A stretch of DNA of 64,000 bases, taken from the IMG/VR virus record IMGVR_UViG_3300023179_004149, positions 1-64,000 of that record. The stretch is one strand, 5' to 3'. Below are positions 9,807 through 46,781 of the stretch, piece by piece (position 1 is the first letter of the stretch; the number at the start of each line of letters is the position of its first letter). The position numbers were made by a program, and so were the translations under genes. The notes below the pieces were generated by a model that was not told the origin of the DNA, did no database searches, and was given only the letters and a program-made list of their open reading frames with translations.

Positions 9807-9855
9807 AGGATGTTTTTGTATTTCGTACCAGAAATTAAATTGCTGAACACATCCT
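9807..9855 (-). ncRNA. CAGCAA-box RNA, short form
   Basis: AGGATGT-GTTCAGCAA...ACATCCT terminal stem. Confidence 0.5.
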
Positions 9856-9873
9856 CTGTTTATATAATTATTG

Positions 9874-9905
9874 CAAAAGTAAGCAAAGTTCTCGAAACTA
9901 CCAAA
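9874..9905 (-). promoter_or_regulatory. Bacteroidota-type primary-sigma promoter (representative of at least 14 copies)
   Basis: TTTG (-33), 20 nt spacer, TACTTTTG (-7, consensus TAnnTTTG). Confidence 0.8.
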
Positions 9906-10059
9906 TTTTTTTGAACTTTTTTTATTTGGGTTATTTTGTTTCGTTTTCCTCTCAATTACAGTACAAAAGTAAGAAAGGTTTCTAAATAAAACAAGCGCTT
10001 TTTGAAATATTTTTTATTTTTATTCGTTTTCGACAATATTTATCAATAAATACATTACT

Positions 10060-10305
10060 ATGAAAAAGTTTTTTATGGATCTTATATCAGGTTCAAGTGA
10101 AACATCAAGCAAAAGGTTTGCTTCTTTATTTACTTTATTTAACATTATAGTTCTGGCTTATCTTGCTGCTTGGAAAAATAACTGGGTTACACCTGAACAT
10201 ATGTTTGATGGTCTTTGTCTTATCACTGGTGGTGGTTTAGGACTTACAGTTATCGAAAAAGTATTTTCTAAAAAGAATAAAGAAGAGGGAACGTCAGAAC
10301 AGTAA
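10060..10305 (+). CDS. Small two-TM membrane protein (possible holin)
   Basis: Two hydrophobic helices and a charged C-terminus. Confidence 0.5.
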   Translation: MKKFFMDLISGSSETSSKRFASLFTLFNIIVLAYLAAWKNNWVTPEHMFDGLCLITGGGLGLTVIEKVFSKKNKEEGTSEQ

Positions 10306-10976
10306 TGAAAGTTTTTAATTCCATACTAACAATAGCATTAAACGAAGGATTAATTCGCACAGAAGAAATTAATAATACCATTAAGATATTACGTAATTCT
10401 TATCCAGACGCTCAAATAACGAGGTATATGGAGAGCATTGAAATTAGTCTTTTAACTGATAATTTAGATCGTTCAAAAATTGAATCATTTTTGAAGTTGA
10501 TAAACAATTTGGGTTGGTATCCGTCAGGTTATTACGCTAAGTCAGAATGGCAAAAGTTCACAAGAGATGGTTTTATTCGAGACATACAAAATTTTAGAAG
10601 GGTAGATCTGATAATTGAAAAGAAATATGACCGAGAATTCAAGAAACAAGATATATTTTACCATGCCACTAAATTGAAGTACGCTCATAAAATAGAAAAG
10701 ATAGGATTAACACCAAGAGCAAAATCCAAAAAAGGCTATCATCCTGAAAGAATTTACCTCGCTATATCATACGATGCGGCATACGATATTCTTGGTTTGT
10801 TATACGATCATGATGAATATTCGGACCCGAATTGGGTTATTTATGAGATTGATGTAAGTAATATACCTAACTTTAAAACAATGGTCGACCCCAACTTTGA
10901 TGGGGGTGTTTATACAACACAAAACATACCACCATCAGCGATAAAACGATTTAAAATTTTAGATCTTTCAAAATAA
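10305..10976 (+). CDS. ADP-ribosyltransferase-fold protein (Tpt1/KptA-like C-terminal domain)
   Basis: FYHAT...IEKIGLTPR, RIYLA, IYEID, YTTQNIPP. Confidence 0.55.
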   Translation: MKVFNSILTIALNEGLIRTEEINNTIKILRNSYPDAQITRYMESIEISLLTDNLDRSKIESFLKLINNLGWYPSGYYAKSEWQKFTRDGFIRDIQNFRRVDLIIEKKYDREFKKQDIFYHATKLKYAHKIEKIGLTPRAKSKKGYHPERIYLAISYDAAYDILGLLYDHDEYSDPNWVIYEIDVSNIPNFKTMVDPNFDGGVYTTQNIPPSAIKRFKILDLSK

Positions 10977-11311
10977 TTAATCGAATATATCAAGTTTTTG
11001 ACCCTCGTAAGTGGTTATGCTGGATCCATCAACAAAGTATATCTTGGTTTCACTCCGATCCCTGGTAGCTGGCCACAAAATCTATTCGGTGCTGGTATTG
11101 ATTCGAGGTAAATATTTCTGTTCAGTGGAAATCTCATGTACAGTTTTTTTTATTAGGTTTTTAATTTTTGGTCTAGTTCTCAAATCATCATAATAATCCT
11201 GATAAGTCTTAGCTTCCGTGGATTTACCTTCATCTTTACAGTTTTTTATTAACTGTATAAGCCGATCTAAGTTAGACATAATATTGTATTCGTGTATGTT
11301 GTGTTCACAAC

Positions 11312-11593
11312 TCATTTCCAACTTATTTTATATTCCAGTGTGCTAAACTCAGCATCTGGTCTACATGGTTTGTGTTCAACCTTAAACCCATCTTCTATAA
11401 GAATACTCTTAACCTGATCGTTGACGGATGAGGTTGCTACCATTATGTAGAAGTGACCATCGTTTGCGGCTTGTTCTATTTTCTTATAAACCTTATTGGC
11501 GTGTGATTTCAACACTGTCTCGGCTATGTGTTTAGCTTCTTCTGCGTTCATATTATAAATATTAGTATTTTGAAAATTTGATAGTATCACCAA
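11312..11593 (-). CDS. Hypothetical protein
   Basis: ORF in a packed minus-strand run. Confidence 0.55.
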   Translation of the reverse strand: MVILSNFQNTNIYNMNAEEAKHIAETVLKSHANKVYKKIEQAANDGHFYIMVATSSVNDQVKSILIEDGFKVEHKPCRPDAEFSTLEYKISWK

Positions 11594-11834
11594 TTTCTTT
11601 GTTTTTGGTTGGTGATGTAATAGTTACATCACAATCCGTGTGGAAATGATATAACGGGTACGGTTCAGAAACCGAAGTTTGAGGTACTAACCATACACTA
11701 TCCACCACGCACCTAAAATAAGGTGCTTTTGTGTCATTGCATGATGTAAAAGAGAGCATCACCCACAGAGCAGCGGCCAGTACGAATAAACCGAATAAAT
11801 ACGGCCATAATCTTAAAATGGTTTTTAGTTTCAC
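11562..11834 (-). CDS. Hypothetical membrane/lipoprotein
   Basis: N-terminal hydrophobic stretch followed by FTSC. Confidence 0.55.
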   Translation of the reverse strand: MKLKTILRLWPYLFGLFVLAAALWVMLSFTSCNDTKAPYFRCVVDSVWLVPQTSVSEPYPLYHFHTDCDVTITSPTKNKEIGDTIKFSKY

Positions 11835-11838
11835 GGTC

Positions 11839-12315
11839 TTAGTTCATTATTTCGTTACGTACCAACATAAGGGCCGAACCAAGAAGATTGGTTCCTCTCC
11901 ATGCTGATGGGTCTAAACTGAGGGGATCATTCTCACCCCTTTCAATACCCCAGATAAAGTCAACTGGTGATGCTTCCACCAGTGTTCTGGTACCTGTGTT
12001 AATCAGCTGTTGTCCCAGGTCTTTATTCTGCGTGAATTTGGCGTAGTTACCCTTATAAACGATGGCAAGGCAATGACGCTTCCATATGGCATCATCATAA
12101 CCCTTAACCCTTCTTCCGAGAGCTTTATGATCAGCTGGGTTGGTGACCAACATAACCTCAGCGGCTATTTCTTTATCGCCGAATAACAATGCTTTCTGAT
12201 GCATCATATATTGTTCAGCCGACGAATAAGTTACACCATCAATTATAAAAACGGATGGTTCCCACTGACTAAAAACACCATCCCAAAATAGCACATATTT
12301 GTCTGTAATTTTCAT
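11839..12315 (-). CDS. NADAR (YbiA-like) family hydrolase
   Basis: FSQW, SAEQYMM.QKA.LFGD, KALGR.V, KFTQN, LVEASP.D.IWGI, G.NLLG.ALM.VR. Confidence 0.92.
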   Translation of the reverse strand: MKITDKYVLFWDGVFSQWEPSVFIIDGVTYSSAEQYMMHQKALLFGDKEIAAEVMLVTNPADHKALGRRVKGYDDAIWKRHCLAIVYKGNYAKFTQNKDLGQQLINTGTRTLVEASPVDFIWGIERGENDPLSLDPSAWRGTNLLGSALMLVRNEIMN

Positions 12316-12318
12316 ATC

Positions 12319-12720
12319 TTAGTTATTTTCTGATTTAATGTCTGCGATAATCATATCGATGAATAGCGGTGTGTTCCCAGCCAGGATGAAATTATTTAGT
12401 TTATCGAATGAAACCCAGAAATATTCTGAGTGTTCACGTTCTGATAAAATAACTGGCGGGATCGAATCTATTGTTGTGTAGTAACAACTAACCATAAATT
12501 CACCACTACCAGATAGACACTCGCCCACATATATTAGATCAGATACTTTTATTCCAGTTTCTTCAAACGTTTCTCTGATGGCACCTTCGAGTGTAGTTTC
12601 ATCTAGTTCGACTTTACCACCTGGTATACACCATCCGTTTGATTTACCCACTCGGTATTGTCTTTTCAGTAATAAGATCCTATCACCGACAACGATACCG
12701 CAAACAGCTGATTTTTTCAT
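12319..12720 (-). CDS. NUDIX hydrolase
   Basis: Nudix box PGGKVELDETTLEGAIRETFEETG; likely start MKKSAVCG just after a promoter. Confidence 0.88.
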   Translation of the reverse strand: MKKSAVCGIVVGDRILLLKRQYRVGKSNGWCIPGGKVELDETTLEGAIRETFEETGIKVSDLIYVGECLSGSGEFMVSCYYTTIDSIPPVILSEREHSEYFWVSFDKLNNFILAGNTPLFIDMIIADIKSENN

Positions 12721-12803
12721 TTCTTTTTGTTTAGGATACAAAAGTAAGAATTTTTTTTGACATAACCAAATAAAAATGGGATAACTTTCGTTATCCCATT
12801 GCG

Positions 12804-12877
12804 TTGTCCTGGTGAGAGTTGAACTCACTACCTTCACCTTATCAGGGTGACAATCTAAACCGTTGATATACAGGACA
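12804..12877 (-). tRNA. tRNA-Ile(GAT)
   Basis: TCACC-CTGATAA-GGTGA. Confidence 0.9.
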
Positions 12878-13000
12878 AAATAAGGTCATTGTTACAACAT
12901 CTCTCACCCACTTTCTTGGCAGGGTATCCATCATGCGTTCCGTTAACCGATGTATAATTTTATAGCCCTTGACGGAACAAGCTGGGCAACCAATTTTTTG

Positions 13001-13072
13001 GGGTCAAGCACGGTATCGATCCGAGTTCTCCTGATTCACAGTCAGGCACATCACCTTAATGCTTCAAGACCC
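13001..13072 (-). tRNA. tRNA-His(GTG)
   Basis: CCTGA-CTGTGAA-TCAGG; G-1:C73 possible; A54-type T loop. Confidence 0.85.
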
Positions 13073-13080
13073 ATGTGTTG

Positions 13081-13153
13081 TAGCCTTATGGTGAATCGAA
13101 CACCAGTTGTCGTCTTGTAAGGACGATGCACTAAACCACTGTGCTATAAGGCT
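13081..13153 (-). tRNA. tRNA-Val(TAC)
   Basis: TCGTC-CTTACAA-GACGA. Confidence 0.9.
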
Positions 13154-13160
13154 ATTAATG

Positions 13161-13232
13161 TTGTGAGTACGAGGTTCGAACTCGTATGACGAATGTATAA
13201 GATTCGCAGCCTAACCATTAGCTGAACTCACA
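13161..13232 (-). tRNA. tRNA-Ile(TAT)
   Basis: CGAAT-CTTATAC-ATTCG; TGTGAGT/ACTCACA acceptor. Confidence 0.82.
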
Positions 13233-13315
13233 ATAATTCTGTCTTTCCAGATGTCAAATATACTATTGACTTGTCAATACTTTAATATTGACGCTTACCG
13301 CATATTAGGGTTAGG

Positions 13316-13387
13316 TGCGCCTTGCTGGTATCGATCCAGCCCCCGCAGCTTAAAAGGCTGCTGCCTACACCTGTTTGCCAAAAGCGC
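13316..13387 (-). tRNA. tRNA-Lys(TTT)
   Basis: GCAGC-CTTTTAA-GCTGC. Confidence 0.88.
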
Positions 13388-13390
13388 ATT

Positions 13391-13840
13391 TTATTGTTCC
13401 AACCATTTATACCAACCTTGTTGTTTAGCTGTTCGCCTATGGTGACAGTTAGCACATCTGGTTTCGCATTTTTTTAATTCTTTCTCTATGGTACCCCAAA
13501 CAGTGGAATATACCATATTTGAAATCACACCCTTTTTATCAACACCATCCATATGATCCGACTGGAGAACTATGGGGTCAGTTTCACCACAAACAACACA
13601 AGGATGATCTAAATAATGCTGATACAATTTTCTCCTATTCTCTTCAATTTCAGCTTTCCTTCGTTTTCTAATCACCGCTTTATGGTGGTTGGTATTTTCT
13701 GAATAATATTGTTTTGATCGTTCATTACTACATTTTCTACAAATATTATTATATCCGTCTTTTTTACCCTTATTTTTATTAAATTCGGATATTTTTTTCT
13801 CGTCTTTGCACTTAGTGCATATTTTCTTATTTTCTTCCAT
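13391..13840 (-). mobile_element. HNH endonuclease gene inserted in the tRNA cluster
   Basis: CTKC...CRKC Zn motif; CVVCGE...LQSDH...CANCHHRRT HNH core. Confidence 0.85.
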
Positions 13841-13881
13841 AATAATAAATATAAGGAAAAAACTTTTAAAATAAACACTGG

Positions 13882-13919
13882 TTAAAAGTGTGGTGCTCTA
13901 CCGATTAAGCTACGAGACC
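13882..13919 (-). pseudogene. 5' half of a tRNA-Lys(TTT), cut just after the anticodon loop
   Basis: GGTCTCG-TA-GCTTAATCGGTAGAGC-A-CCACA-CTTTTAA, then unrelated sequence leading into the HNH gene. Confidence 0.8.
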
Positions 13920-13926
13920 ATTAAAG

Positions 13927-13999
13927 TAGCTCCGAAGGGACTTGAACCCCCAACCCGCTGAGTAAGAATCAGCTGCTCTGCCAATTAAGCTACGAAGCT
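13927..13999 (-). tRNA. tRNA-Lys(CTT)
   Basis: GCTGA-TTCTTAC-TCAGC. Confidence 0.88.
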
Positions 14000-14003
14000 A
14001 TGT

Positions 14004-14041
14004 AAAACTAAAAATGCTCCAGGGTTCACCTGGAGCATTTG
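14004..14041 (-). terminator. Attenuator terminator 2
   Basis: AAATGCTCCAGG/CCTGGAGCATTT 12-bp stem plus T-tract directly before tRNA-Lys(CTT). Confidence 0.85.
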
Positions 14042-14064
14042 CTAAATTTTATTCTTAAACCCTG

Positions 14065-14145
14065 TTAAGAATTAGACAAATAGTCACCAGGCATAGTTTT
14101 AGCTATGACGTGTTTAATATGCTTTATAATGACTAACTGTTTCAT
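14065..14145 (-). CDS. Leader peptide 2 (26 aa, MKQLVIIKHIKHVIAKTMPGDYLSNS)
   Basis: Manual translation; V/I/K/H core; 3' part complementary to the terminator left arm. Confidence 0.8.
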   Translation of the reverse strand: MKQLVIIKHIKHVIAKTMPGDYLSNS

Positions 14146-14247
14146 CTTATTGATTGTTTATGTTGTTTTAAAATTGTTCTCTTTAATAATTATTACAAAA
14201 GTACGAAAAGTTCTTGATTTTGCAAAGTTTTTTTCAAATATTTTTTT

Positions 14248-14907
14248 TTAATATCCGTAATATATCATTACGTTCTTTTTCCAGTTAAATGTCTTATAAA
14301 TGTTTATAAGCCCAAATATACCGTACTCATACTTCCAACTGGTTGTAATGGTATCACCATGTTCTAAACTAAACGGTGGTAATCCACACCACTCCATATT
14401 CATTGACTTAACATGATTTATCATTTCAATAATAGCTGTCTGTTCTTCGCCAGTTAATTTGGTTCCATCAAAAGTATATTTTGTAAACGGCTCCGAACTC
14501 CAATGGTATTCACTCTCAATTGACTTAAGAAATTCAGACGATCTTTCTTTTTCTCGAGAAAACGGTGCCACCATCACTTGATAGTACTTCTTTATTCTTT
14601 CCTGATAGGTCGAAATCACATAAGCCAGAAACTCTTTAGTCACAATATAAAAATCATATTCATCGTAACGAGCCATTAACTCCTTATTCTTAAAAAATCT
14701 TTTTAATGATTTTTTTGGTGGTTCAAACCCATCGTATTTACCAAATTCATACAACTCAGTACCATACTCATATACGCCTTTATACCAATCATCGTCAGAA
14801 ACATGTTCCTTATTAGGATAATGGTCTTTAAGTTGTTCAAAAGACATTGACTTGATTTTATTGTACTCTCGTTTAGGCATCGAGCCTATGTATGTTCTAT
14901 AACCCAT
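14248..14907 (-). CDS. Hypothetical protein
   Basis: 219 aa ORF. Confidence 0.7.
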   Translation of the reverse strand: MGYRTYIGSMPKREYNKIKSMSFEQLKDHYPNKEHVSDDDWYKGVYEYGTELYEFGKYDGFEPPKKSLKRFFKNKELMARYDEYDFYIVTKEFLAYVISTYQERIKKYYQVMVAPFSREKERSSEFLKSIESEYHWSSEPFTKYTFDGTKLTGEEQTAIIEMINHVKSMNMEWCGLPPFSLEHGDTITTSWKYEYGIFGLINIYKTFNWKKNVMIYYGY

Positions 14908-14954
14908 TAAATATTACAGCTTTAAACCGACTCACTTTTTTTGTAAAAATATTT

Positions 14955-15871: not shown

Positions 15872-16062
15872 CTTTCTCGTTAAAATACTGTTTTAATTCG
15901 TCAATGGTACAGTCCAATCGATATGATATCATATCTTTGGACATGGATAAAAGATAATTTTTAACATCTGTTAAAAAAGATATCATCTCTTCTTTCCACT
16001 CTTCAGTACCGACAATATGTTTTGTCTTCATCTTTATAGTTTTATATCTATAAATATCAGAG

Positions 16063-16135
16063 TGATTCCAGTGGGGATCGAACCCACACCTAATTGATTT
16101 AGAGTCAACTATACTGCCGATTATACTATGGAACC
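16063..16135 (-). tRNA. Amber suppressor tRNA (CTA)
   Basis: GTTGA-CTCTAAA-TCAAT anticodon arm; complete cloverleaf, short variable loop, A73. Confidence 0.85.
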
Positions 16136-19484: not shown

Positions 19485-19490
19485 ATATAG

Positions 19491-19567: not shown

Positions 19568-19624
19568 TAGTCCCCGAAGGATTCGAACCCTCACCAAGTA
19601 TGCTTACCGTTACACCAGAGAACC
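19568..19624 (-). ncRNA. Anticodon-armless tRNA-like RNA (57 nt)
   Basis: Acceptor, D arm and T arm intact; D and T arms joined by only ACTTGGT. Confidence 0.65.
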
Positions 19625-20172: not shown

Positions 20173-20273
20173 CAATTCATCGGATTATTTTAGAAAATCC
20201 CCGTGGGGACTTTTGGAGTTGAACCAAATTTACAAATTTAACCAAAGTAGTTGCTGGAAATAATCCCGAATTG
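20173..20273 (-). ncRNA. CAGCAA-box RNA with an internal T-loop-like hairpin
   Basis: CAATTCGGGATTATT-TCCAGCAA...TTGG-TTCAACT-CCAA...AATAATCCGATGAATTG. Confidence 0.6.
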
Positions 20274-22275: not shown

Positions 22276-23871
22276 ATGAATATTTCAGATTTTCTAATAA
22301 AAGACTCATATGATTATGTCTTACAATCGGATTTAACCACGGGTGTTGTTTACCGAATTGGTGGTGATGTTCCAGTAAACCCAACATTTGCGTCTGGTTT
22401 AACGGTTAATGAAAATTTTACATATAAAGATGGTTCGGAACAAAATGGTTATGTATTAACTTCTGACGCTGACGGTAAAGCTTCCTGGAAATCAGTTAGT
22501 GGTGCGGTTAGTGGTAGTAACGGTACATCTGGTAGCTCTGGTGAAAGTGGTTCATCTGGTAGCTCAGGATCTTCTGGTAGTAATGGTGAAAGTGGTTCAT
22601 CTGGTTCATCGGGGTCATCAGGGTCATCAGGTACTTCAGGAACAAGTGGTATAAATGGTATTTCGGGTGGGGCGATTTATTACTTCAATCAATCCGTAAC
22701 CCAAACCCCATATAATGAATTTTCAACATTATCAACCACCGCATCTCAACAAACATCTACAGTCACTATTGCAAAGGGTGCAACATCAACAATTAATTCA
22801 TATTTAACCCCATCAAATATACCAAACGTATCGGTTATTCCGCCAGGTATTTGGTCATTTTATCTGCACACATATAAAGAAGACAGTAACTCATCATTTG
22901 AAATTTTTTGTCGGGTTTATTCAAAAGCTATAGATGGAACTGAAACTTTATTATTTGAAACAGATCCCGCACCAGTAACGAGTATTTCACCAAATCCATC
23001 AATGGTATTAACCGATGTGTATCAGCCAGGGTATTCTATCAATACAACTGATAGAATCATAGTTAAAGTAAGTGCAACCAATACATCTAATCAATCACAC
23101 TCAATTACATTTGTAACAGAAGGTACTGTTCATTATTCTTATGGACAAACAACATTAGGTATTTTTGGTAACTCTGGTTCATCTGGTTCATCTGGTTCAT
23201 CGGGATCATCTGGTTCATCTGGTTCATCGGGATTATCGGGATCATCTGGTTCATCTGGTTCATCGGGATTATCGGGTTCATCTGGTTCATCGGGATTATC
23301 GGGTTCATCTGGTTCATCGGGATTATCGGGATCATCTGGTTCATCTGGTTCATCGGGATTATCGGGATTATCGGGATCATCTGGTTCATCGGGATTATCG
23401 GGATCATCTGGTTCATCGGGATTATCGGGATCATCTGGTTCATCGGGATTATCGGGATCATCTGGCTTAAGTGGTACATCTGGTAGCTCAGGCACATCAC
23501 CAGATATAACGAACGCTAAAATAGGTACTATAACATTTATAGCTGATGGAAGTGGTGGTGTTATTACCACTGGTAGTAAAGGGTATATAACAATACCATA
23601 TAATGGAACACTTTTATCTTGGTATTTATTTGCTGACCAGTCTGGTTCTATATCAATAGATATTAAAAAATGCAATTATAGTACGTTTCCAACCACTACA
23701 AGTATTGTAGCTGGAAATTATCCAAATTTAACGAATCAACAAAAAAACACGGATTCAACATTAACTGGATGGGATACATCATTAAACAGTGGGGATATTC
23801 TTGAATTTGTTATAAATTCAACAATTAGTGTTAGCCACACAACATTACAATTAACAATACAAAAAGCATAA
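22276..23871 (+). CDS. Ser/Gly-repeat virion fibre-like protein
   Basis: Two (SGS/SGL)n tracts separating beta-rich domains. Confidence 0.7.
   Translation: MNISDFLIKDSYDYVLQSDLTTGVVYRIGGDVPVNPTFASGLTVNENFTYKDGSEQNGYVLTSDADGKASWKSVSGAVSGSNGTSGSSGESGSSGSSGSSGSNGESGSSGSSGSSGSSGTSGTSGINGISGGAIYYFNQSVTQTPYNEFSTLSTTASQQTSTVTIAKGATSTINSYLTPSNIPNVSVIPPGIWSFYLHTYKEDSNSSFEIFCRVYSKAIDGTETLLFETDPAPVTSISPNPSMVLTDVYQPGYSINTTDRIIVKVSATNTSNQSHSITFVTEGTVHYSYGQTTLGIFGNSGSSGSSGSSGSSGSSGSSGLSGSSGSSGSSGLSGSSGSSGLSGSSGSSGLSGSSGSSGSSGLSGLSGSSGSSGLSGSSGSSGLSGSSGSSGLSGSSGLSGTSGSSGTSPDITNAKIGTITFIADGSGGVITTGSKGYITIPYNGTLLSWYLFADQSGSISIDIKKCNYSTFPTTTSIVAGNYPNLTNQQKNTDSTLTGWDTSLNSGDILEFVINSTISVSHTTLQLTIQKA
23173..23490 (+). 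repeat. Tandem 9-nt coding repeat (TCTGGTTCA / TCGGGATTA / TCGGGATCA)
   Basis: Directly visible; encodes SGS/SGL units. Confidence 0.9.
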
Positions 23872-29514: not shown

Positions 29515-29599
29515 TGGCGGTCTCGATGGGATTCGAACCCATGATCTTCGCCGTGACGCGTTACAGGGCGACAGGGACGACCAACTCCCCTACAAGACC
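29515..29599 (-). tRNA. tRNA-Asp-like gene with a 7-nt insertion in the anticodon loop
   Basis: TCGCC-CTGTAACGCGTCAC-GGCGA; G73; encoded CCA. Confidence 0.75.
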
Positions 29600-29813: not shown

Positions 29814-30045
29814 ATATGGTTATTTAATTCTAACCCTTTCAACCGATTCAATCTCAGCATCTCCTTTAATGAGTGCTTCGAGTGTACCTTTTCTGTAGGA
29901 TAAAGAATTGTTATTCATTATCTGGTAAGAATCGCAGATGATTGTATCTCCGTTCATCAATGTGATTTTGTATTTCATATCGTTTTTGTTTTTTACAAAG
30001 ATAAATCAAGTTTTTGAAACCACCAAATTTTTGTTTAAAAGTTTC

Positions 30046-30151
30046 AGGATGTTTTTTGTTTTTTGTTTTTATTTCAGACGGGGCTCGAACCCGTGACCCA
30101 AGGCTCTAACCAACTGAGCTACCAAAATGGATTAATTGCGGAACACATCCT
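30046..30151 (-). ncRNA. CAGCAA-box RNA variant (CCGCAA) enclosing tRNA D and T arms with no anticodon arm
   Basis: AGGATGT-GTTCCGCAA...GCTCAGTTGGTTAGAGC-CTTGGGTC-ACGGG-TTCGAGC-CCCGT...ACATCCT. Confidence 0.7.
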
Positions 30152-30167
30152 CCAAACTTTTAAATTG

Positions 30168-30238: not shown

Positions 30239-30253
30239 AAATACTTTAATAAG

Positions 30254-30378
30254 TCCCGACAAGAGGACTCGAACCTCTACCTTTTTCGTTTAAAGAAATT
30301 GTTTTTAGATAATGACTTGCTGTAACCATCCACTCTGGATGACTCTGTTTTTTAATGCTACCATTACACCATGTCGGA
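30254..30378 (-). ncRNA. tRNA-like RNA with a large insertion carrying a CAGCAA box
   Basis: TCCGACA/TGTCGGG acceptor, D arm and T arm intact; insertion CATCCA-GAG-TGGATG-GTTACAGCAA. Confidence 0.72.
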
Positions 30379-30479
30379 ATTTTTAAAATGAAAAACGAGT
30401 AATTGACTCTATGCCTCAAACGTCAATGTTCCGACCATTGTACCGTGTTCACCCATGAGTGGGTCGTTTTTCAAATTAG

Positions 30480-30849: not shown

Positions 30850-30930
30850 CAATTCATCGGAATGGGTCTTTTAGCTTGAATCATTAAGAGTGAATTGCTT
30901 GTAGAGTTTGCTGTAATCATTCCCGAATTG
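30850..30930 (-). ncRNA. CAGCAA-box RNA
   Basis: CAATTCGGGAATG-ATTACAGCAA...CATTCCGATGAATTG; same terminal stem as 20173-20273. Confidence 0.6.
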
Positions 30931-31237
30931 TTTTACAAAAGTAAGAAGAGTTTTTCAATTTTCCAAATCTTTTTTGAGATTTTTTTATTTGTAAACTACT
31001 CCGTTTTTTTCTTCTTGTTTAAGAGCTTCAATCTCAGATACCAGGTAATTGAATTCTGTCTCTGACATTTGTTTTTTTTCTTTGGTTGATAAGCGACTGT
31101 ATTTATACTCAATCCCTTTCCAGTTTTCTTCAAGCATCTTTAGCAAAGCTAACCAGACATGCCAATTTAGTTTTTTCATTTGTTTCAGTGTTGTGTTTGC
31201 AAAAGTAAGAATTATTTTTGAAACCACCAAATTTATT

Positions 31238-32245: not shown

Positions 32246-32303
32246 GGGATTATTTATTTTTTAACAAAAGTAAGAATTATTTTCGAAACCACCAAATATT
32301 TTA

Positions 32304-40337: not shown

Positions 40338-41921
40338 TTAAGTTTTATTTATTATTATATAGTTTACCAAACTAGTTTCACCCGTGTCTTGTGATAATAT
40401 ATTAAATGATGTATTACCAACTGAAATCTTATATGTTAAATCAGATATGGTTGGTAACGGAGTTGTTGTGCTATAATTAACTCTAGTTAAAAACACCAAA
40501 TTACCACTTATCATAGTCTTAGTAACCGTTGCCGTACCACCACTTAAATATATTTGCCCCTGATTAGCTGGTGATATTGTTGTACCAGTGTTAATTACCG
40601 TGTTTGATTTTATTTTAATTGTGTTACCGTTAGATGTTAGTTCCAAATTACCAGTTATTTGTACCTTTGAACCGCTACCAGTGTCACCACTAGAGCCAAC
40701 TAATACCACGCCATTAAAATAATTCTTTGTTAGTGAACCTGTTTGGTAATAACTATAAGCATTTATATTATTTGTTTGATCTTCAATAGATCGATAACTA
40801 CTTAATAAACTAGTTAATGTTGGTTCAATTAATATTGAACGTTTTGAACCAGTTGGCGAACCAGATTCATCTATAATTATATTTAATTTAGTTAATGTCC
40901 AATCAGCTGTTCCTCCAGATGGATTAATTGGTGTCTCATTAAACGTTGAAAATTTAGCAAGAACATATCTTGTTGTTGCCGTTGTTGTTACTGAAGAGCC
41001 GTTTTGTATTAATATTCTTAATGACCCATTTGACGATGATGTTGTTCTAATATACCTTAAATTATCAAAACCATATATATAATTAAAATTAATAAAATTG
41101 ACATGGTTTTGATTATTTCTAATACTTATATAGTTTAGTGTTGACCTAATACCAAATGAAATATTATCATACGCACCAGGTGCGGTACCATCATATGAAT
41201 CAACAATAAACCCTCTAGTACTACCGCCAATATAAGTATTTAAAAATGCTATGGCTGGACTAGTAATGCCAGATGTCACACCTGTTAAACCATAACCATT
41301 CATTCTGGTCGTTCCTCTGTAATTATCCGTTAAATCAAACGAAATCTTTTTGTTAGGGTTGTTACTATCATATGCCACCAATTTAACATCATAATTATCC
41401 AAAGTACCTCCTGTCATAGTATATCCGAAAGTATTACCAGACGATAACCACAATGTGTTTGGTGTAAAACCATTTGAACCGTAAATACCCGTTAAACCCA
41501 CCGACCCAGAACGTCCTGAGGTCCCTGATGTCCCTGACGTTCCTGATGTTGACGACCAACCCGAAGATCCATTAACACCATAAAAACCCGATGACCCAGA
41601 TGTTCCAGCTAAACCAGCACTACCAGCTGTACCGCTCGAACTAAACCCATAAAAATTCTCGGTTGAACTAACCGTTTCCCATAAGACAATATTACCATTA
41701 GTTCGGGTAAATTCGTTATTATTTAAAGCGTATGCTAATTTATCGTGTGTTGTAACACATCTATATAATTCAAACTCACCCCCAGATTCTTTATATATAA
41801 CAAATTGACCCGCCACATAATCACCGAGAGCCCACTTGTTCTTGGTTAAATAACGAAAATTACCATCCAAATCCTCAAACGATAATGGTTTTGATGTGTC
41901 TGACCTTAATATTATACTCAT
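40338..41921 (-). CDS. Tail-fibre-like virion protein with SGTSG linker (paralogue A)
   Basis: N-terminal LRSDTSKPLSFEDLDGNF, SGT repeats, beta-rich body. Confidence 0.7.
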   Translation of the reverse strand: MSIILRSDTSKPLSFEDLDGNFRYLTKNKWALGDYVAGQFVIYKESGGEFELYRCVTTHDKLAYALNNNEFTRTNGNIVLWETVSSTENFYGFSSSGTAGSAGLAGTSGSSGFYGVNGSSGWSSTSGTSGTSGTSGRSGSVGLTGIYGSNGFTPNTLWLSSGNTFGYTMTGGTLDNYDVKLVAYDSNNPNKKISFDLTDNYRGTTRMNGYGLTGVTSGITSPAIAFLNTYIGGSTRGFIVDSYDGTAPGAYDNISFGIRSTLNYISIRNNQNHVNFINFNYIYGFDNLRYIRTTSSSNGSLRILIQNGSSVTTTATTRYVLAKFSTFNETPINPSGGTADWTLTKLNIIIDESGSPTGSKRSILIEPTLTSLLSSYRSIEDQTNNINAYSYYQTGSLTKNYFNGVVLVGSSGDTGSGSKVQITGNLELTSNGNTIKIKSNTVINTGTTISPANQGQIYLSGGTATVTKTMISGNLVFLTRVNYSTTTPLPTISDLTYKISVGNTSFNILSQDTGETSLVNYIIINKT

Positions 41922-41923
41922 TT

Positions 41924-43450
41924 TTATATCTTATCTATTATTAAGTAATTAACATTATTATTATCAGAAGGATCTGTTGAGTTAATAGTAATACTCACAC
42001 CAGGTACATATGTATATGTTAAAATACCCATCGGTGGTATAGCATCATTATATGTTAAATATATTAATGGATTAGTTAAATTTGGGTTATTAAAAGTAAT
42101 AGTGGCTGTACCTGATGTTAATATTACCGTACCAATAGTTGATAACGTGGGGTCACTCCCCTTTATTTTAATTGTGTTACCGTTAGATGTTAGTTCCAAA
42201 TTACCAGTTATTTGTACCTTTGAACCGCTACCAGTGTCACCACTAGAGCCAATTAACACTGTACCATTAAAATAATTCTTTGTTAATGAACCTGTTTGAT
42301 AATAACTATAAGCATTTATATTATTTGTTCGATCTTCAATTGATCGATAACTACTTAATAAACTGGTTAATGTTGGTTCGATTAATATTGAACGTTTTGT
42401 TCCTGTTGGTGGATTACCAAAAACATCATTACTTTCATTTATGGGTAATGCAAACCTTAATAAGGACCAATTGGCAGTTCCACCTGTGGGTGAAATAGTA
42501 CTAATAGAACCAAATTCAGTCAATACTGCTTGCATTGACGTACTATTATAGGAAGTACCTGATGCGAAGGATATTGTTAACCCCGTGTTAACAGTACCAT
42601 TAATTAAGTATTGTAAATTATCGAAACCAAATATAGCGCCCGATCCAGTTAGTGAACCGCTTGGGTTATACTCAAGATTTAAATTACCATTTTCTCTAAA
42701 TCTTAAATACCTACTAGTGCCTGTTAATATACCGATACAAAAAGAATCACTTGACCCAGGTAATGAAGTTTGATAATTATCTAGTAAAAAACCTCGCGGT
42801 TCATCGTTCTCAGTTCTTGCAAAAACAACACCAGGGCTCGTATAGCCCGAACCACTACTATTACCATATAATGTAACTGTACCTTTATTAAGATCACTAA
42901 GTAACAACCTTGGTAAACCATTACGTACTAATAAGACATCTCTATTATCCAAAGTACCACCTGTCATTATCGTACCGTAAGTATTACCACTCGATTCCCA
43001 CGGTCTTAGTGGTGTTGAACCTGATGTACCTGAGCTACCCGAGGATCCAGAAGATCCCGATGAACCCGATGTACCCGATGTACCATTACCACCCGATGAA
43101 CCCGATGTACCCGATGTACCAGATGAACCAGATGTCCCAGAAGATCCAGAAAGACCAGAAGATCCGTCTATACCAGAAGACCCCGAAGTTCCCGAATTTG
43201 GGTTAGCACCTATTTTTAACCACAAAACAGTATTGTTATATGTTGTAGCAAACACACCATAAGGGTATACTTCTCGTTCATGTGTTGTCTCACAACGATA
43301 TAAAAATATACCATTATTTTCATTATTAATGATATATTGACCCCTTTCATAGGAACCTAATGACCAATATTTAATATCTAAATAAGTAAAATTGTTATCT
43401 AATTCTTTATGTGTTAAAGGTCTATCAATATCACTTCTTAATGTTATAGA
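41924..43450 (-). CDS. Tail-fibre-like virion protein with SGSSG linker (paralogue B)
   Basis: N-terminal LRSDIDRPLTHKELDNNF; shares a near-identical block with paralogue A. Confidence 0.7.
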   Translation of the reverse strand, partial: SITLRSDIDRPLTHKELDNNFTYLDIKYWSLGSYERGQYIINNENNGIFLYRCETTHEREVYPYGVFATTYNNTVLWLKIGANPNSGTSGSSGIDGSSGLSGSSGTSGSSGTSGTSGSSGGNGTSGTSGSSGSSGSSGSSGTSGSTPLRPWESSGNTYGTIMTGGTLDNRDVLLVRNGLPRLLLSDLNKGTVTLYGNSSGSGYTSPGVVFARTENDEPRGFLLDNYQTSLPGSSDSFCIGILTGTSRYLRFRENGNLNLEYNPSGSLTGSGAIFGFDNLQYLINGTVNTGLTISFASGTSYNSTSMQAVLTEFGSISTISPTGGTANWSLLRFALPINESNDVFGNPPTGTKRSILIEPTLTSLLSSYRSIEDRTNNINAYSYYQTGSLTKNYFNGTVLIGSSGDTGSGSKVQITGNLELTSNGNTIKIKGSDPTLSTIGTVILTSGTATITFNNPNLTNPLIYLTYNDAIPPMGILTYTYVPGVSITINSTDPSDNNNVNYLIIDKI

Positions 43451-43539
43451 CATAATTTCTTTTAGTATAAATATCACCCATAAAAAATAAAAACCACTAT
43501 ATAGTGGTTTTTATTTTTAAAAAGAAATAGCATAAATAA

Positions 43540-44205
43540 CTACCTTTTCTTTCTTTCAAGAACGGCATCAATCATTCCGTAATCTTTTGCTTCTGCCGCA
43601 ACCATCCAGTAATCTCTTTCTGAATCTTTGTATACTTTGTCGTATTCTTGACCAGAATGTTTTGAAATAATCTGATAAAGTTCGGTTTTCAATTTACCAA
43701 TTTCTCTCGCTGTAATTTCAATATCTGTCGCTTGACCCTCAGCACCCCCTAATGGTTGGTGAATCATAACTCTTGAGTGCGGTAAAGCGTATCTTTTGTT
43801 TTTTGCACCAGCGCAAAGTAATACCGCAGCCATTGAAGCGGCTAAACCTGTGCACAGTGTTGATACTTCTGGTTTAATGTACTGCATGGTATCATAAATA
43901 CCCAAACCAGCGTAAACGCTACCACCTGGTGAGTTAACATAGATTTGAATACCTTTGTCAGCTTCAACCGATTCCAAATACAACAATTGCGCCTCAATTA
44001 TGTTTGAAACACGATCATCTATTTGGGTTCCGAGGAAGATAATCCTTTCCATCATTAAACGCGAAAATACGTCCATTGAGGCCACATTCAATTCACGTTC
44101 TTCAATAATGTAAGGTGTTAATGAGCTCGTGTAGTTATGTAGGGTCATGCTATTAATGCCCATGTGTTTCGTTGCGTAGTTCTTAAAATCTTTTCCGATA
44201 TTCAT
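43540..44205 (-). CDS. clpP: ATP-dependent Clp protease proteolytic subunit
   Basis: DVFSRL..ERIIFLG, YVNSPGG, GLAASMAA (Ser), RVMIHQP (His), RDYWM (Asp). Confidence 0.96.
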   Translation of the reverse strand: MNIGKDFKNYATKHMGINSMTLHNYTSSLTPYIIEERELNVASMDVFSRLMMERIIFLGTQIDDRVSNIIEAQLLYLESVEADKGIQIYVNSPGGSVYAGLGIYDTMQYIKPEVSTLCTGLAASMAAVLLCAGAKNKRYALPHSRVMIHQPLGGAEGQATDIEITAREIGKLKTELYQIISKHSGQEYDKVYKDSERDYWMVAAEAKDYGMIDAVLERKKR

Positions 44206-44236
44206 TAGTGATTAATTTTGTACAAAAATAATCATT

Positions 44237-45937
44237 TTAATTGGTATAAACAAGAAAATCCTCAGCTTTTAATTTAAAATTATCGAATAAATACTTTTCA
44301 AAGTACGCCTTAGAATAGATCTGTTCCAGAAAAATCCGATTATTGTCTATTTCATTTGTCATAAACGCCTTAATATTTTTTATTATATGTGAGTTGTCAA
44401 TCCGCCCAGGTTCAGAATGTTCATAGGGGTTTCTAACACCCCATTCAATTCCAGATGTCCAGAATTTAAATATAATCTGATTTTGATTATCTCTTATAGC
44501 AAATAAAGCTGATGGACTATTTAAAGCGTATGCTTTTTCGTAGGTTTGTACTTCATAAGATGAAGTACAAACTATGTTAGTTGATTTTTTAGGTTGACTA
44601 TTTTGCAAAATTAGTAAATTATACCCTTCTGGTAATATTTTTCTTAATCTGACAACAAATAAATTATTAAGTTTAAATGTACCAGTTTCACTCCTGGCGA
44701 CACATAAAGCGTCATAAATTCGTTGATAATCATAGAGATTATCCCAATATTCAGCTGGATGTGTTATTTTGAGTTTTATACTAAACATCTCAAAATACGA
44801 CAAGGCTTTAAAAACCCTAAAACATTTGTTCAGATTTGTTATGTGATTATAATATGCTAAAACCTCACTTATGTTAAAACCATAATAATCAATCATCCGA
44901 TGAACAAACATAGGTACTTTACCATTACCAAATTCACGTTTAAAATCATGGTAATGGTTCGGTGTTATTAACTCGAGCTCTTTATATTTTGATGCTGGTA
45001 TGTTGTATCGTTTTATGAAATCCAATAAACCGACGCGGATACCTGGTAAATTAAAACAATATGAAAGCCCCCTTCCCGTTTTCACGTATTCAGCATGGTG
45101 ATTATTAAATGCTTTAATGGTGTGTAATGTCAGTTCATCTTTAATAATCATTAAAAGATCATTATCCTTAATATCGTAATGATGTTTTATGTAATCATAT
45201 ACTGATCGATTATAGAAACATTTCTTATTACATTTGTAAATAAACTCAAATATTGGTAAGTTTTCGTAATTTAAATCCTTGATACCAGATTTGAAAAGGT
45301 AATTCAAGAACGGAAATGATGGTAAGGAATGCACTAATTTTGGGTCGTAAAAAGACTGAGAAAGAGGTGGTAAATATTCATTGAAAAAATCTTTATACCC
45401 CATCAGCGGTTTATAACCAAGTAACTCATATAGTTTTTCAACAGCTTTAACTGAGTTATTATTAACAATGAAATACTTAGTAATTAACCCTTTTAAGTCT
45501 TCGGTTATTATGTTTTTTCTAATCGTATAATAGTACTTGCGCTTTTTATATATTTTTCTGTAAATTGAAAATTCGCCTGTGGTTTTATTAATTGTTAGGG
45601 AAAAATGTTCGTGCTGTGTAATCTTGAATTTAAGACGTACAAGGTTTTTAACTGGTACCGTTCGTTTAGCCATAATAAAGGCTTTGAGTGATACTGTATT
45701 TTTGGTTATGTTTTCTGATACCACATAAGTAGAACGATAAAAGGAAGCGGGATTGTTTTCACTCATCGCTTTCTTAAATTCGATTTCATCAGTCGGTAAC
45801 CAATACATTTGATCTGTCGCCGATTTAACCTCAAAACCATCAAAAGGTGATAAATCACTTTTAGATTCTTTCGGCTTAATAAGTTTGTAGTTATAATATT
45901 CTTCATCCACATGTATGTAATGTACGATATGCTCCAT
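44237..45937 (-). CDS. Hypothetical protein
   Basis: Large ORF with no recognised motif. Confidence 0.7.
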   Translation of the reverse strand: MEHIVHYIHVDEEYYNYKLIKPKESKSDLSPFDGFEVKSATDQMYWLPTDEIEFKKAMSENNPASFYRSTYVVSENITKNTVSLKAFIMAKRTVPVKNLVRLKFKITQHEHFSLTINKTTGEFSIYRKIYKKRKYYYTIRKNIITEDLKGLITKYFIVNNNSVKAVEKLYELLGYKPLMGYKDFFNEYLPPLSQSFYDPKLVHSLPSFPFLNYLFKSGIKDLNYENLPIFEFIYKCNKKCFYNRSVYDYIKHHYDIKDNDLLMIIKDELTLHTIKAFNNHHAEYVKTGRGLSYCFNLPGIRVGLLDFIKRYNIPASKYKELELITPNHYHDFKREFGNGKVPMFVHRMIDYYGFNISEVLAYYNHITNLNKCFRVFKALSYFEMFSIKLKITHPAEYWDNLYDYQRIYDALCVARSETGTFKLNNLFVVRLRKILPEGYNLLILQNSQPKKSTNIVCTSSYEVQTYEKAYALNSPSALFAIRDNQNQIIFKFWTSGIEWGVRNPYEHSEPGRIDNSHIIKNIKAFMTNEIDNNRIFLEQIYSKAYFEKYLFDNFKLKAEDFLVYTN

Positions 45938-46012
45938 AATCAGAAAAATTGATTCGCACAAAACTATGAAATAAAAACCATAAAAACAAAAATCGGGAGA
46001 ATATTCTCCCGA

Positions 46013-46384
46013 TTATTTTACATCAATTTTTAAGCTTTCCGTTTTCTGTTCCTTTAGGGGTACTTTTATTCTTAATAAACCATTTGTCATCGCCGCTTCA
46101 ACCTTACCCAGATCATATTTGTCTGTTAATTGGTATGAGTAGCGATAATCCTGGTATCGTTTAAGATACCCATCTGGCTTATTTAATTTGGTTTTGATGG
46201 TAAGTGTTTTACCCATAACTTCCAATTCGATTTCGTTTTTACTTAATCCAGGTAAAGGGATCTCCACAGAAAAGTCTTGATCTTTAGTAGTGTATGATTC
46301 CATATCATACGAATTCAGTAATTCATCAACCATCTTGATGAAGTCCATTGTGTTTGTTCTGAATGGTGTTCTAATCATGTTCAT
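46013..46384 (-). CDS. Small heat-shock protein (Hsp20)
   Basis: VEIPLPGLSKNEIELEV, A.MTNGLLRIKVP, C-terminal I-x-V. Confidence 0.88.
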   Translation of the reverse strand: MNMIRTPFRTNTMDFIKMVDELLNSYDMESYTTKDQDFSVEIPLPGLSKNEIELEVMGKTLTIKTKLNKPDGYLKRYQDYRYSYQLTDKYDLGKVEAAMTNGLLRIKVPLKEQKTESLKIDVK

Positions 46385-46495
46385 AATATTTAGTTTTATT
46401 CTGAATAAAGCACATTATGTGCCAAACGATATTTATGTTATTATGACATGACATAAATAAAAAAGGCTGACATCATGTCAGCCTTAAATGTTAAC

Positions 46496-46554
46496 TGAGT
46501 GGCTTTTTTATTTTAAATCAATTTAAATAAGTAGAAGATTGCTGTAACCACTCA
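46496..46554 (-). ncRNA. CAGCAA-box RNA, short form
   Basis: TGAGTGGTT-ACAGCAA...AGCCACTCA. Confidence 0.55.
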
Positions 46555-46580
46555 CATTATTTTGTAAAATAAGAAAAGAA

Positions 46581-46781
46581 ACCAGGTATCATCGGAATCG
46601 TATGTCTTTTGGTTACCCAGGCGACAAACCCTGACGATTTTCTTAGAAACCCACGTCACCGAGAATCAGCGCCTACCCAGACGGAGCATAACGCATAACA
46701 GTTTATTGGGGTCGATGGCTTTCCTGTTGCATAATTGAATTTTTAAGTTTCAGTTTGCTGCAAGTATTCCCGATACCTGGT
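46581..46781 (-). ncRNA. CAGCAA-box RNA, long form, 15 nt downstream of the Ro60-like gene
   Basis: ACCAGGTATCGGGAAT-ACTTGCAGCAA...ATTCCGATGATACCTGGT terminal stem. Confidence 0.65.

Follow-up and report, generated by a model that had tools for sequence, protein, structure and literature searches.

A widespread family of phage RNAs with a C-N-G-C-A-A box, putative Y-RNA-like partners of a divergent Ro60-like protein

Ro60 and its Y RNAs form a classic ribonucleoprotein (RNP) whose bacterial and phage biology is still thinly understood. In this study, we analysed a stretch of 64,000 nucleotides (nt), here called the window, from the 321-kb uncultured phage contig IMGVR_UViG_3300023179_004149. 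The window contains six small elements built around a CAGCAA box, and two of them start right after a gene for a Ro60-like protein with the Pfam domains DUF2828 and DUF7788. The elements belong to a family of structured RNAs, which we call CNGCAA-handle RNAs, that is widespread among phages, was previously uncatalogued and is linked to this gene. These RNAs are probably the Y-RNA-like partners of a divergent clade of Ro60-like proteins. A first-pass annotation of the window had proposed a phage Ro-like system, and this reading is supported by the Ro60-like fold of the protein, the gene linkage and the Y-RNA-like architecture of the elements, from which we infer binding.

The elements lie at positions 9807-9855, 20173-20273, 30046-30151, 30850-30930, 46496-46554 and 46581-46781. 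Their placement in the first-pass annotation stood, and the strand is minus for all six (CAGCAA reads TTGCTG on the plus strand). They follow one design, as had been claimed. Read from 5' to 3', the closing stem is followed by a spacer of 1-5 nt and by the box; next comes a cargo of very different length (~25 to ~170 nt), and the stem's 3' strand and a G complete the element. The box is CAGCAA in five elements and CCGCAA in 30046-30151. The description of the box therefore held for the window; for the wider family the consensus is C-N-G-C-A-A, and the conserved G after the 3' strand and the outer helix of four of the elements have to be added. Two subclasses are evident. In the first, the strings TCGGGAWT and AWTCCGATGA fold into an outer stem and an inner one (GGAAU/AUUCC) with a small internal loop between them; they occur jointly at only three non-coding sites, 20173-20273, 30850-30930 and 46581-46781, which bears out the internal-loop stem reported for these three elements. 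The longest element carries the exact strings TCGGGAAT and ATTCCGATGA. The second subclass consists of 9807-9855 and 30046-30151, which have in common the 5' string GGATGTGTTCMGCAAT (16 nt) and the 3' strings ACATCCTG and ACAUCCUG, both with outer helices. A K-turn or C/D-box reading of CCGAUGA was dropped on inspection of the sequence, since the opposite strand has CG and not the GA needed for tandem sheared pairs, and since the loop is variable between relatives. A relaxed scan of the window for extra copies gave nothing convincing past the six. Near-matches to the strings TCGGGAWT and AWTCCGATGA otherwise lie solely in a collagen-like coding tandem repeat at 23197-23460 on the plus strand, within the open reading frame (ORF) 22276-23871, which contains many TCGGGATT/ATCCCGATGA strings and thereby inflates simple motif counts for the internal-loop class (class I).

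The cargos are unrelated to one another. The cargo of the CCGCAA-box RNA (30070-30128) is a 59-nt unpermuted tRNA-like domain with acceptor, D and T arms that scores 39.6 bits with the Rfam tRNA model; it has no anticodon arm and no complete cloverleaf, and ARAGORN makes no call. The cargos of the other window elements match no known family in Rfam. Across the whole family, the same handle encloses short loops, long inserts and tRNA-like domains, in agreement with the annotation's picture of a constant stem with exchangeable contents.

Two of the elements form the tandem pair that had been noted behind the von Willebrand factor type A (vWA) gene. The long element (spacer ACUUG, box CAGCAA, cargo of ~170 nt) starts at 46781-46786, ~10-15 nt past the Ro-like stop codon at 46796-46798, and the short one follows it. 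A terminator-like hairpin ends this unit (Table 1), and equivalent terminators stand behind the elements of the metagenomic loci L001, L006 and L009. The other four elements are 16-37 kb from the gene, on the same strand, and accompany tRNA arrays. The 30850-30931 RNA lies directly behind a promoter and 16 nt ahead of the first tRNA (Phe) of an array; the 9796-9867 RNA lies behind a promoter and upstream of a tRNA array; the 20173-20273 RNA (fold z = -3.1) follows a near-consensus promoter and heads a tRNA array. The promoter pattern in question, TTTG-N17-23-TAnnTTTG, is of the Bacteroidota type; 5.85 matches were expected in the window and 19 were found, with 18 on the minus strand. Exact matches stop 6-20 nt upstream of the elements starting at 30930 and 9855. 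The annotation had placed three elements right at host-type promoters; this is exact for these two, while the third (20273) has the same -7 box but CTTG at -33, and its promoter is thus near-consensus only.

A covariance model, R2, was built from 24 short elements of other phages, covering seven host groups and including none from the window. Applied to the window, R2 gave exactly five matches at an expectation value (E) <=10 (128 kb searched; E-values are rough because the calibration was short), and all five are among the six elements (Table 1). The covariance-model check proposed with the annotation thus recovered five of the six elements and nothing else in the window. R2 misses the sixth element, 46581-46781, because of its 170-nt cargo. 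Its place in the family follows from orthology and from stem and loop strings that it shares exactly with two R2 matches: it is orthologous to gene-adjacent elements of the metagenomic loci L001 and L006-L013, where its stem shows compensatory changes. The short tandem copy is likewise conserved in L001, L006, L007 and L010. Two earlier attempts at modelling were set aside. In a first model (R1, from 12 long-cargo elements) the AU-rich cargo dominated, so that the window elements reached only E ~0.2 and spurious matches appeared, and a seed alignment mixing one-stem and two-stem elements (A6) had misaligned 3' strands and was left unused.

The stems of the family covary. Among the R2 seeds, compensatory changes were found at all 7 stem pairs. 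When R2 was run on 67 loci (401 kb, both strands), all 52 matches at E<=0.05 lay near the Ro-like gene and on its strand. In the alignment of these 52 matches, which was fitted to the R2 model itself, 98.3% of the cells were paired as against 59% after shuffling and 29-49% with the partner strand slid, and the covariation score was 1.00 (reached by none of 500 shuffles) against 0.245. RNAalifold, applied to 37 gene-adjacent elements, recovered the inner stem unguided, with compensatory changes at 5 of 6 pairs and almost none broken. The outer stems required another approach. Internal loops vary in size, which spreads the outer-stem registers from 265 to 273 in the 37-sequence alignment and makes a single register unusable; cognate and non-cognate flanks were therefore compared. 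Cognate 5'/3' flanks paired with a mean of -9.4 kcal/mol and non-cognate ones with -3.0 (Mann-Whitney p = 6e-17).

Co-occurrence was assessed on fetched loci, on the complete genomes of two phages and on a 50-kb region from one more. We fetched 84 viral loci (L numbers) with homologues at 52-100% identity. In nearly all of ~60 distinct related loci, a C-N-GCAA box (N, any base) stands 20-75 nt past the stop codon of the gene; in a few loci it comes one small inserted ORF further on, and within 700 nt of the stop codon it is absent only from L035, L045 and L066. The stems are wholly different between lineages and are nevertheless always paired. Cultured phages that carry the same module beside the gene include Felixounavirus, Listeria, Bacillus, Campylobacter, Synechococcus, Cronobacter and Mycobacterium phages (Table 1). 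With a strict descriptor, 63 kb of cultured-phage loci gave 19 sense matches and 1 antisense match, compared with 2.15 +/- 1.6 in shuffles. In the complete genome of Felixounavirus CL1 (87.8 kb), R2 matches below E 1e-5 are confined to three elements that follow the gene within <=1 kb on its downstream side; a fourth, long-cargo element was matched in part. Phage T5, which has 25 tRNAs, contains no Ro-like homologue (tblastn at E<=1, 120 kb) and no R2 match below E 0.1; in its tRNA cluster (L098, NC_005859 28-42 kb), eight stable RNAs of unknown function are annotated, of which some are tRNA-like, and R2 matches none of the eight. The co-occurrence with DUF2828 that the annotation had asked about was thus found in nearly all of ~60 loci, with agreement of strand for all 52 R2 matches, clustering near the gene in CL1 and absence from T5. 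Adjacency to tRNA genes was considered as a general rule and abandoned. tRNA genes lie <=3 kb away on the same strand in 8 of 11 cultured loci, while most metagenomic loci have no tRNA within 2.5 kb and only one metagenomic clade shows the association; it is therefore frequent but not defining.

Among the cargos of relatives, a permuted domain consisting of a T-arm, a closed acceptor stem and a D-arm, which is typical of YrlA, was found in one CL1 copy (L086 4429-4554) and in one copy of the mycobacteriophage MiniMac (L087 3544-3672). In one large metagenomic subgroup (loci within L015-L083, for example L037 3160-3310), a conserved interleaved pattern CUUC...GGG...GAAG...CCC stands just ahead of the 3' strand of the handle; judged by its sequence, this is a candidate H-type pseudoknot.

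The protein encoded beside the tandem RNAs has the overall fold of Ro60. In the window its gene is split by a homing-endonuclease ORF (Table 1), and the two pieces were searched separately, unjoined. Alignment to unsplit orthologues of 466-486 aa shows that the break is clean, between ...ADAL and TAKN..., with no residues lost, and that a stop or start codon of its own is present in each half. The likely true start of the N-terminal piece is the ATG at 49227, with a promoter at 49265-49296. The 347-aa C-terminal piece, whose DUF7788 vWA domain carries the MIDAS (metal-ion-dependent adhesion site) motif DVSGSMS, recurs on other contigs, where it forms protein clusters of its own (P0059, P0065); the split form thus seems to persist. 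All six RNAs are intact despite the split. For modelling, we used an unsplit orthologue 87% identical to the window pieces; AlphaFold2 with 128 aligned sequences gave a model with a mean local confidence (pLDDT) of 95.1 and a predicted template modelling score (pTM) of 0.93. In a Foldseek search of the PDB, the top seven matches were all Ro60/TROVE proteins over their full length (E 4.6e-9 to 3.4e-6, template modelling (TM) scores 0.52-0.61, 506-566 aligned columns). The best was phiRo60 of the Thermus phage phiLo (9kop, E 4.6e-9, structural-alignment identity ~18%); the others included Xenopus Ro60 (1yvp, 1yvr and 2i91, E ~1e-6) and human Ro60 (9nf8), and the remaining PDB matches covered the vWA domain only, at E>0.01. 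The model is thus predicted to consist of an alpha-helical repeat domain followed by a vWA domain and to superpose on Ro60 over the full length, and the structure check asked for in the annotation found full-length relatives in the Ro60/TROVE group only.

At the sequence level the relation is confined to the vWA part. The MIDAS residues D268, S270 and S272 are invariant in the 128 sequences, profile searches reach the Ro60 chains of Xenopus and human as well as phiRo60 in the MIDAS region (E 0.02-0.05), and hhalign against gp220 of the mycobacteriophage Bxz1 aligns the vWA part only (E 6e-5, probability 64.6%). Pfam assigns DUF2828 and DUF7788 to the window protein and gives no TROVE match. 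Since the fold is that of full-length Ro60 but only the vWA domain is related in sequence, we speak of a Ro60-like fold in a family outside Pfam TROVE. This family is large, with 8,309 clusters at 50% identity, >7,900 matches among 90% clusters and 710 cultured phage records. PHROG 850, to which the window protein belongs, is named 'RNA-binding protein', and the GenBank label in cluster-L mycobacteriophages is 'Ro-like RNA binding protein'; a literature search on DUF2828 found no functional papers.

Two mycobacteriophages provide the best indirect argument that the box is the recognition element of the protein. Bxz1 gp220 is a canonical TROVE + vWA_Ro60 protein, and upstream of its gene lie YrlA-like RNAs in which the 5' strand is followed by GCCGAGAG or GCCGAAGG, the published GNCGAAN0-1G motif; R2 has no match in 50 kb of this phage. 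MiniMac, a phage of the same host genus, has a DUF2828-type protein and CAGCAA boxes in the equivalent place. Its copy with the YrlA-like permuted tRNA domain scores 37.7 bits with Rfam YrlA (E 3e-5), below the threshold of 69. Thus, the type of motif tracks the type of Ro-like protein.

Several observations weigh against a partnership between these RNAs and the protein. The box does not resemble the known Ro-binding motif, and neither Pfam nor hhalign detected sequence similarity between the helical domain and TROVE; the Foldseek TM-scores are moderate. In the window, four copies are distant from the gene, and the gene is split by a homing-endonuclease gene, so that the protein may be non-functional or may function as two chains. 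No element was found within 2.5 kb of the gene in Vibrio phage F86, L035, L045 and L066. The support from R2 is itself uneven, since the copy at 30044-30151 reached only E 0.93, the E-values are approximate, and two of the seeds are orthologues of the top window match (46494-46554).

If the CNGCAA-handle RNAs are partners of the Ro60-like protein, the following scheme may be envisaged. The handle consists of the covarying basal stem (usually with a GG start and a CC end), the spacer of 1-5 nt, the single-stranded C-N-G-C-A-A box and the G after the 3' strand. It would serve as a docking site for the phage Ro60-like ring (DUF2828 helical domain and DUF7788 vWA domain), just as Y RNAs dock on Ro60 with their terminal stem and the GNCGAA/GGUCCGA motif. 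The exchangeable cargo, which ranges from short AU-rich loops to long structured inserts and also includes tRNA-like domains, might act as an effector or tether module or as a gate of the ring. Two of the window copies would be produced from the 3' end of the Ro-like gene transcript and four from tRNA-operon transcripts, three as promoter-proximal leaders and one between tRNAs; the latter four would probably be released by tRNA-processing nucleases. During infection, structured RNA or tRNA would then most likely be the target of the RNP, whether for quality control, for decay or for repair. Such a role is pointed to by what is known of Ro60, for which Y RNA tethers polynucleotide phosphorylase (PNPase) for the decay of structured RNA, and which also acts in the maturation of rRNA and is linked to RtcB repair operons (PMC4201824, PMC12135203, PMC7824862). 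The gene context is consistent with it, in that the window encodes a CCA-adding-enzyme-like protein, a Listeria phage has RtcB near the gene, and tRNA genes stand close by in 8 of 11 cultured loci.

A more far-reaching version of this scheme, which we regard as unlikely, is that the handle is universal. One phage Ro-like ring would carry many RNA cargos (tRNA mimics, pseudoknots, bare hairpins) as a toolkit across thousands of phage lineages, mass-produced from tRNA operons through tRNA processing, perhaps delivered with the virion, and would take over or protect host tRNA and RNA-decay systems, for example against tRNA-cleaving defences. Delivery of the particle by virions is conceivable, since the homologue in Listeria phage CKA15 was found in purified particles. 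A possible seventh member of the window bears on this version. At 30250-30381, a tRNA-like body has its anticodon arm swapped for the hairpin CAUCCA-GAG-UGGAUG, which is followed by GUUA-CAGCAA (GUUACAGCAA). The handle parts stand in the order 3' strand with trailing G, loop, 5' strand, spacer and box, and no alternative partner strands were found nearby. This may, with low confidence, be a circularly permuted handle placed where YrlA has the Ro-binding stem. The same hairpin-box string in five other contigs is a junction between tandem elements, and the permuted reading therefore rests on a single sequence. If the handle is universal, this element would show that a true tRNA body can also accept it at the anticodon position.

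Other explanations must be weighed against the partnership of RNA and Ro-like protein. It is improbable, in our judgment, that the elements are cis-acting processing or stability signals, that is, leader and trailer hairpins that steer or block host RNases at tRNA operons and at the mRNA of the gene, without a specific link to the Ro-like protein. Their positions would suit such a role: three copies are promoter-proximal leaders of tRNA arrays, two lie in the 3' untranslated region ahead of a terminator, and in Felixounavirus and Bacillus phage Thrax4 copies stand between tRNA genes. However, one and the same single-stranded box is retained by phages of Bacteroidota, Proteobacteria, Firmicutes, Actinobacteria, Cyanobacteria and Campylobacterota, groups with different RNases; in most metagenomic loci the RNA stands by the gene and there is no tRNA within 2.5 kb; T5, with its 25 tRNAs and no Ro-like gene, has no such RNA; and some cargos are elaborate tRNA mimics.

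The elements could also be operators, through which the Ro-like protein controls its own mRNA and the tRNA operons in cis, and not free partner RNAs. All of the linkage evidence is common to this explanation and to the partner reading, and copies do stand at the 3' end of the gene transcript and at the 5' ends of tRNA operons. We nevertheless hold it to be quite improbable, since tandem arrays of three or four copies and tRNA-mimic cargos are hard to account for, the RNAs adjacent to the gene in known Ro60 systems are free Y RNAs (PMC4201824, PMC12135203), and terminal stems between tRNA genes favour excision as discrete RNAs. A similarly small probability is given to the idea that the RNAs partner another factor, either a host protein or a phage CCA-adding enzyme, RtcB or chaperone, and that their proximity to the gene reflects only a shared 'RNA module'. 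The CCA-adding-enzyme-like protein of the window, the presence of RtcB and ROOL RNA nearby in Listeria phage LMTA-94, and the intact RNAs beside a split gene would fit this idea. Against it, the Ro-like gene is the only constant neighbour across all loci, and the box type switches with the Ro-like clade in two mycobacteriophages of the same host. That the elements are chance look-alikes or selfish DNA repeats without function at the RNA level is scarcely credible, for although the box is short and CAGCAA occurs 34 times in this AT-rich window, the stem sequences differ between copies with pairing kept, the strand bias is complete (52 to 0), and a model trained elsewhere gave no false positive in the window.

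Table 1. Positions of the RNA elements, R2 matches, promoters and protein-coding pieces in the window, and copies of the RNA in cultured phages. R2 E-values are approximate.
Feature	Position	Strand	Description
Long-cargo CAGCAA-box RNA	46581-46786	minus	Outer stem ACCAGGUAUC/GAUACCUGGU, 1x3 internal loop, inner GGAAU/AUUCC
Short single-stem CAGCAA-box RNA	46494-46554	minus	UGAGUGG, spacer UUA, CAGCAA, cargo, CCACUCA, G
Intrinsic-terminator-like hairpin, then T run	46456-46485	minus	Ends the unit of gene and two RNAs
Orphan CAGCAA-box RNA	30850-30931	minus	Outer ACAAUUC/GAAUUGU, inner GGAAUG/CAUUCC
Orphan CAGCAA-box RNA	20173-20273	minus	Outer stem as in the 30931 copy; inner GGAUUAUU/AAUAAUCC
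Orphan CAGCAA-box RNA	9796-9867	minus	Inner AGGAUGU/ACAUCCU at 9805-9855, weak outer helix
CCGCAA-box RNA within tRNA array	30035-30163	minus	Inner AGGAUGU/ACAUCCU, outer AAAGUUU/AAACUUU
Candidate circularly permuted member	30250-30381	minus	tRNA-like body (acceptor, D, T arms), low confidence
R2 match	46494-46554		46.2 bits, E 1e-8
R2 match	9805-9855		30.9 bits, E 7e-5
R2 match	30857-30923		27.5 bits, E 5e-4
R2 match	20180-20266		22.7 bits, E 8e-3
R2 match	30044-30151		14.4 bits, E 0.93
Bacteroidota-type promoter	9874-9905	minus	TTTG, 20 nt, TACTTTTG; drives the 9855 element
Bacteroidota-type promoter	30936-30967	minus	Drives the 30931 element and the tRNA array behind it
C-terminal piece of Ro60-like protein	46796-47839	minus	347 aa; end of DUF2828 and DUF7788 vWA (Pfam), PHROG 850
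N-terminal piece of Ro60-like protein	48724-49287	minus	Pfam DUF2828 positions 1-114; residues 1-133 of unsplit orthologues
GIY-YIG segE-like homing-endonuclease ORF	47937-48782	plus	Pfam PF19835; splits the Ro-like gene
Listeria phage LMTA-94	just upstream of Ro-like gene		Three tandem copies
Felixounavirus CL1	behind Ro-like gene		Four copies scattered within tRNA array
Mycobacteriophage MiniMac	downstream of Ro-like gene		Three tandem copies
Cronobacter phage S13	4654-4788		One copy, downstream of gene, past tRNAs
Synechococcus phage BUCT-ZZ01	directly upstream and downstream of gene		Copies in the gaps
Campylobacter phage F357	between tRNA-Met and gene		Two copies
Bacillus phage Thrax4	ahead of gene		Four copies, in and after a 20-tRNA array

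The window as a whole has faint similarity at the DNA level to huge uncultured phages. Its genes are nearly all on the minus strand, and it contains at least 31 tRNA genes. One of these (16062-16135, minus) has the anticodon CTA of the amber-suppressor type and is labelled Pyl by ARAGORN, and another (29515-29599, minus) has an 8-nt anticodon loop (tgta); the two hint at stop-codon recoding or frameshift suppression in this phage. A tRNA-like gene without an anticodon arm (19568-19624, minus, 57 nt) lies within a tRNA array, scores 32.9 bits with the Rfam tRNA model and is uncalled by ARAGORN; there is no CNGCAA handle around it. The ORF at 1407-2579 (minus) has a poly(A) polymerase/CCA-adding-enzyme head and RNA-binding domains. 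Judging from these domains, it is a candidate phage tRNA nucleotidyltransferase, which could also act on tRNA-like cargos. The 18 promoter sites on the minus strand (for example 31200-31231, 32265-32296 and 49265-49296) have in common a longer consensus, roughly TTTGGTGGTTTCAAAAAC-N-TTACTTTTG, which suggests one strongly conserved promoter class. A sigma-70 family ORF is present at 61023-61814.

Neighbours of the Ro-like gene in other phages also deserve mention. In Listeria phage LMTA-94, a match to ROOL RNA (L085 1467-2018; NC_047872 105011-105562) reaches 84.4 bits (E 5.5e-16; gathering score 99.1, thus below threshold). It is found 1 kb upstream of the gene, and a gene for a tRNA-splicing ligase (RtcB) lies 1.3 kb downstream. 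In two phages that are unrelated, one a metagenomic contig (L003 4961-5701) and the other Bacillus phage Thrax4 (L094 4539-5780), the Ro-like gene has a calcineurin-like metallophosphatase gene ~1 kb downstream, which may be an RNA-end-healing partner.

Within the resources searched, what appears to be new is a defined, probable partner RNA family for a much larger protein clade, with its CNGCAA handle, modular cargos, spread through tRNA operons and match between motif and clade. DUF2828/DUF7788 proteins occur in model and biocontrol phages such as Felix O1-like phages, P100-like Listeria phages, Campylobacter phages and cluster-L mycobacteriophages. The RNA family provides these proteins with a putative partner that has a simple, mutable box, so that function is testable in tractable hosts. 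The pairing of CNGCAA with DUF2828 and of GNCGAA with TROVE gives a naturally occurring specificity pair, useful in studies of RNA recognition by Ro-type rings. The family also accounts for unannotated gaps in many phage tRNA clusters.

Phage proteins of the Ro60 type with adjacent Y-like RNAs have already been described (PMC4201824; phiLo 2025, PMC12135203). Y RNAs adjoin Ro60 genes, mimic tRNA and, in bacteria, bear GNCGAAN0-1G near the 5' end; in animals the Ro-binding motif on the 5' strand is GGUCCGA (PMC4201824). The window has no match to the Rfam models Y_RNA (RF00019) and YrlA (RF02553); around 46300-46900 this holds even at E<=10. CNGCAA RNAs are not represented by a family in Rfam 15, and permissive searches gave no relevant family other than tRNA and the sub-threshold YrlA match in a relative. 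Since the Ro-binding motif and the Rfam models are unmatched and the protein is outside Pfam TROVE, the elements fall outside the Y RNA/YrlA families described so far. In architecture they parallel Y RNAs, and they would work in the manner of a Ro60/Y-RNA system.

Vertebrate Ro60 with Y RNA, and TEP1 with vault or telomerase RNA, are other RNPs built on the TROVE module. Like the system described here, they pair a helical-repeat ring and a vWA domain with small structured non-coding RNAs. They differ in being eukaryotic and in their RNA motifs, and the helical domain of the phage protein has no sequence-level relation to theirs. The stable RNAs of T5 (RNAI, RNAIII, RNA1-3 and others; NC_005859) are also small RNAs among tRNA genes, some of them tRNA-like and presumably freed by tRNA processing. 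Unlike the CNGCAA-handle RNAs, they have no R2 match and T5 has no Ro-like gene.

Experimental hints come only from the Listeria phage CKA15. Its Ro-like homologue is abundant and was detected in purified virions with 57% sequence coverage, and three very highly transcribed non-coding regions lie <=2 kb upstream of the Ro-like gene, about which the authors speculated on Y RNAs (PMC12282133). At least one of these regions, likely the most transcribed, is probably a ROOL RNA as in LMTA-94, and the CKA15 evidence is therefore not specific to the CAGCAA elements.

A close phage parallel is the Thermus phage phiLo, whose phiRo60 binds two adjacent Y-like RNAs (PMC12135203). This phage protein is a canonical TROVE protein, and its RNAs (Yrl1 and Yrl2; structures 9KOP and 9L5Y) carry a CGAA motif and lie upstream of the gene; these points set it apart from the present system. 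Common to both are a phage ring of the Ro60 type and two adjacent terminal-stem RNAs with a short conserved motif.

A further comparison is with YrlA and its partner Rsr/Ro60 (RF02553). The motif is C-N-G-C-A-A here and GNCGAAN0-1G in YrlA, and the partner is DUF2828/DUF7788 here and TROVE/vWA_Ro60 there. Many copies of the present family are minimal hairpins, the tRNA-like cargo in the window is unpermuted and has no anticodon arm, and copies are scattered through tRNA operons far from the gene, all unlike YrlA. On the other hand, both kinds of RNA share the strand of a neighbouring Ro60-like gene, which for Y RNA/YrlA means one ~4 kb away or closer, and both often occur as two to four copies in tandem. 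Both have a terminal stem formed by the 5' and 3' ends, a short motif right after the 5' strand and a variable second domain, and in the relatives from MiniMac and CL1 this second domain is the same permuted arrangement of T-arm, closed acceptor stem and D-arm that YrlA possesses.

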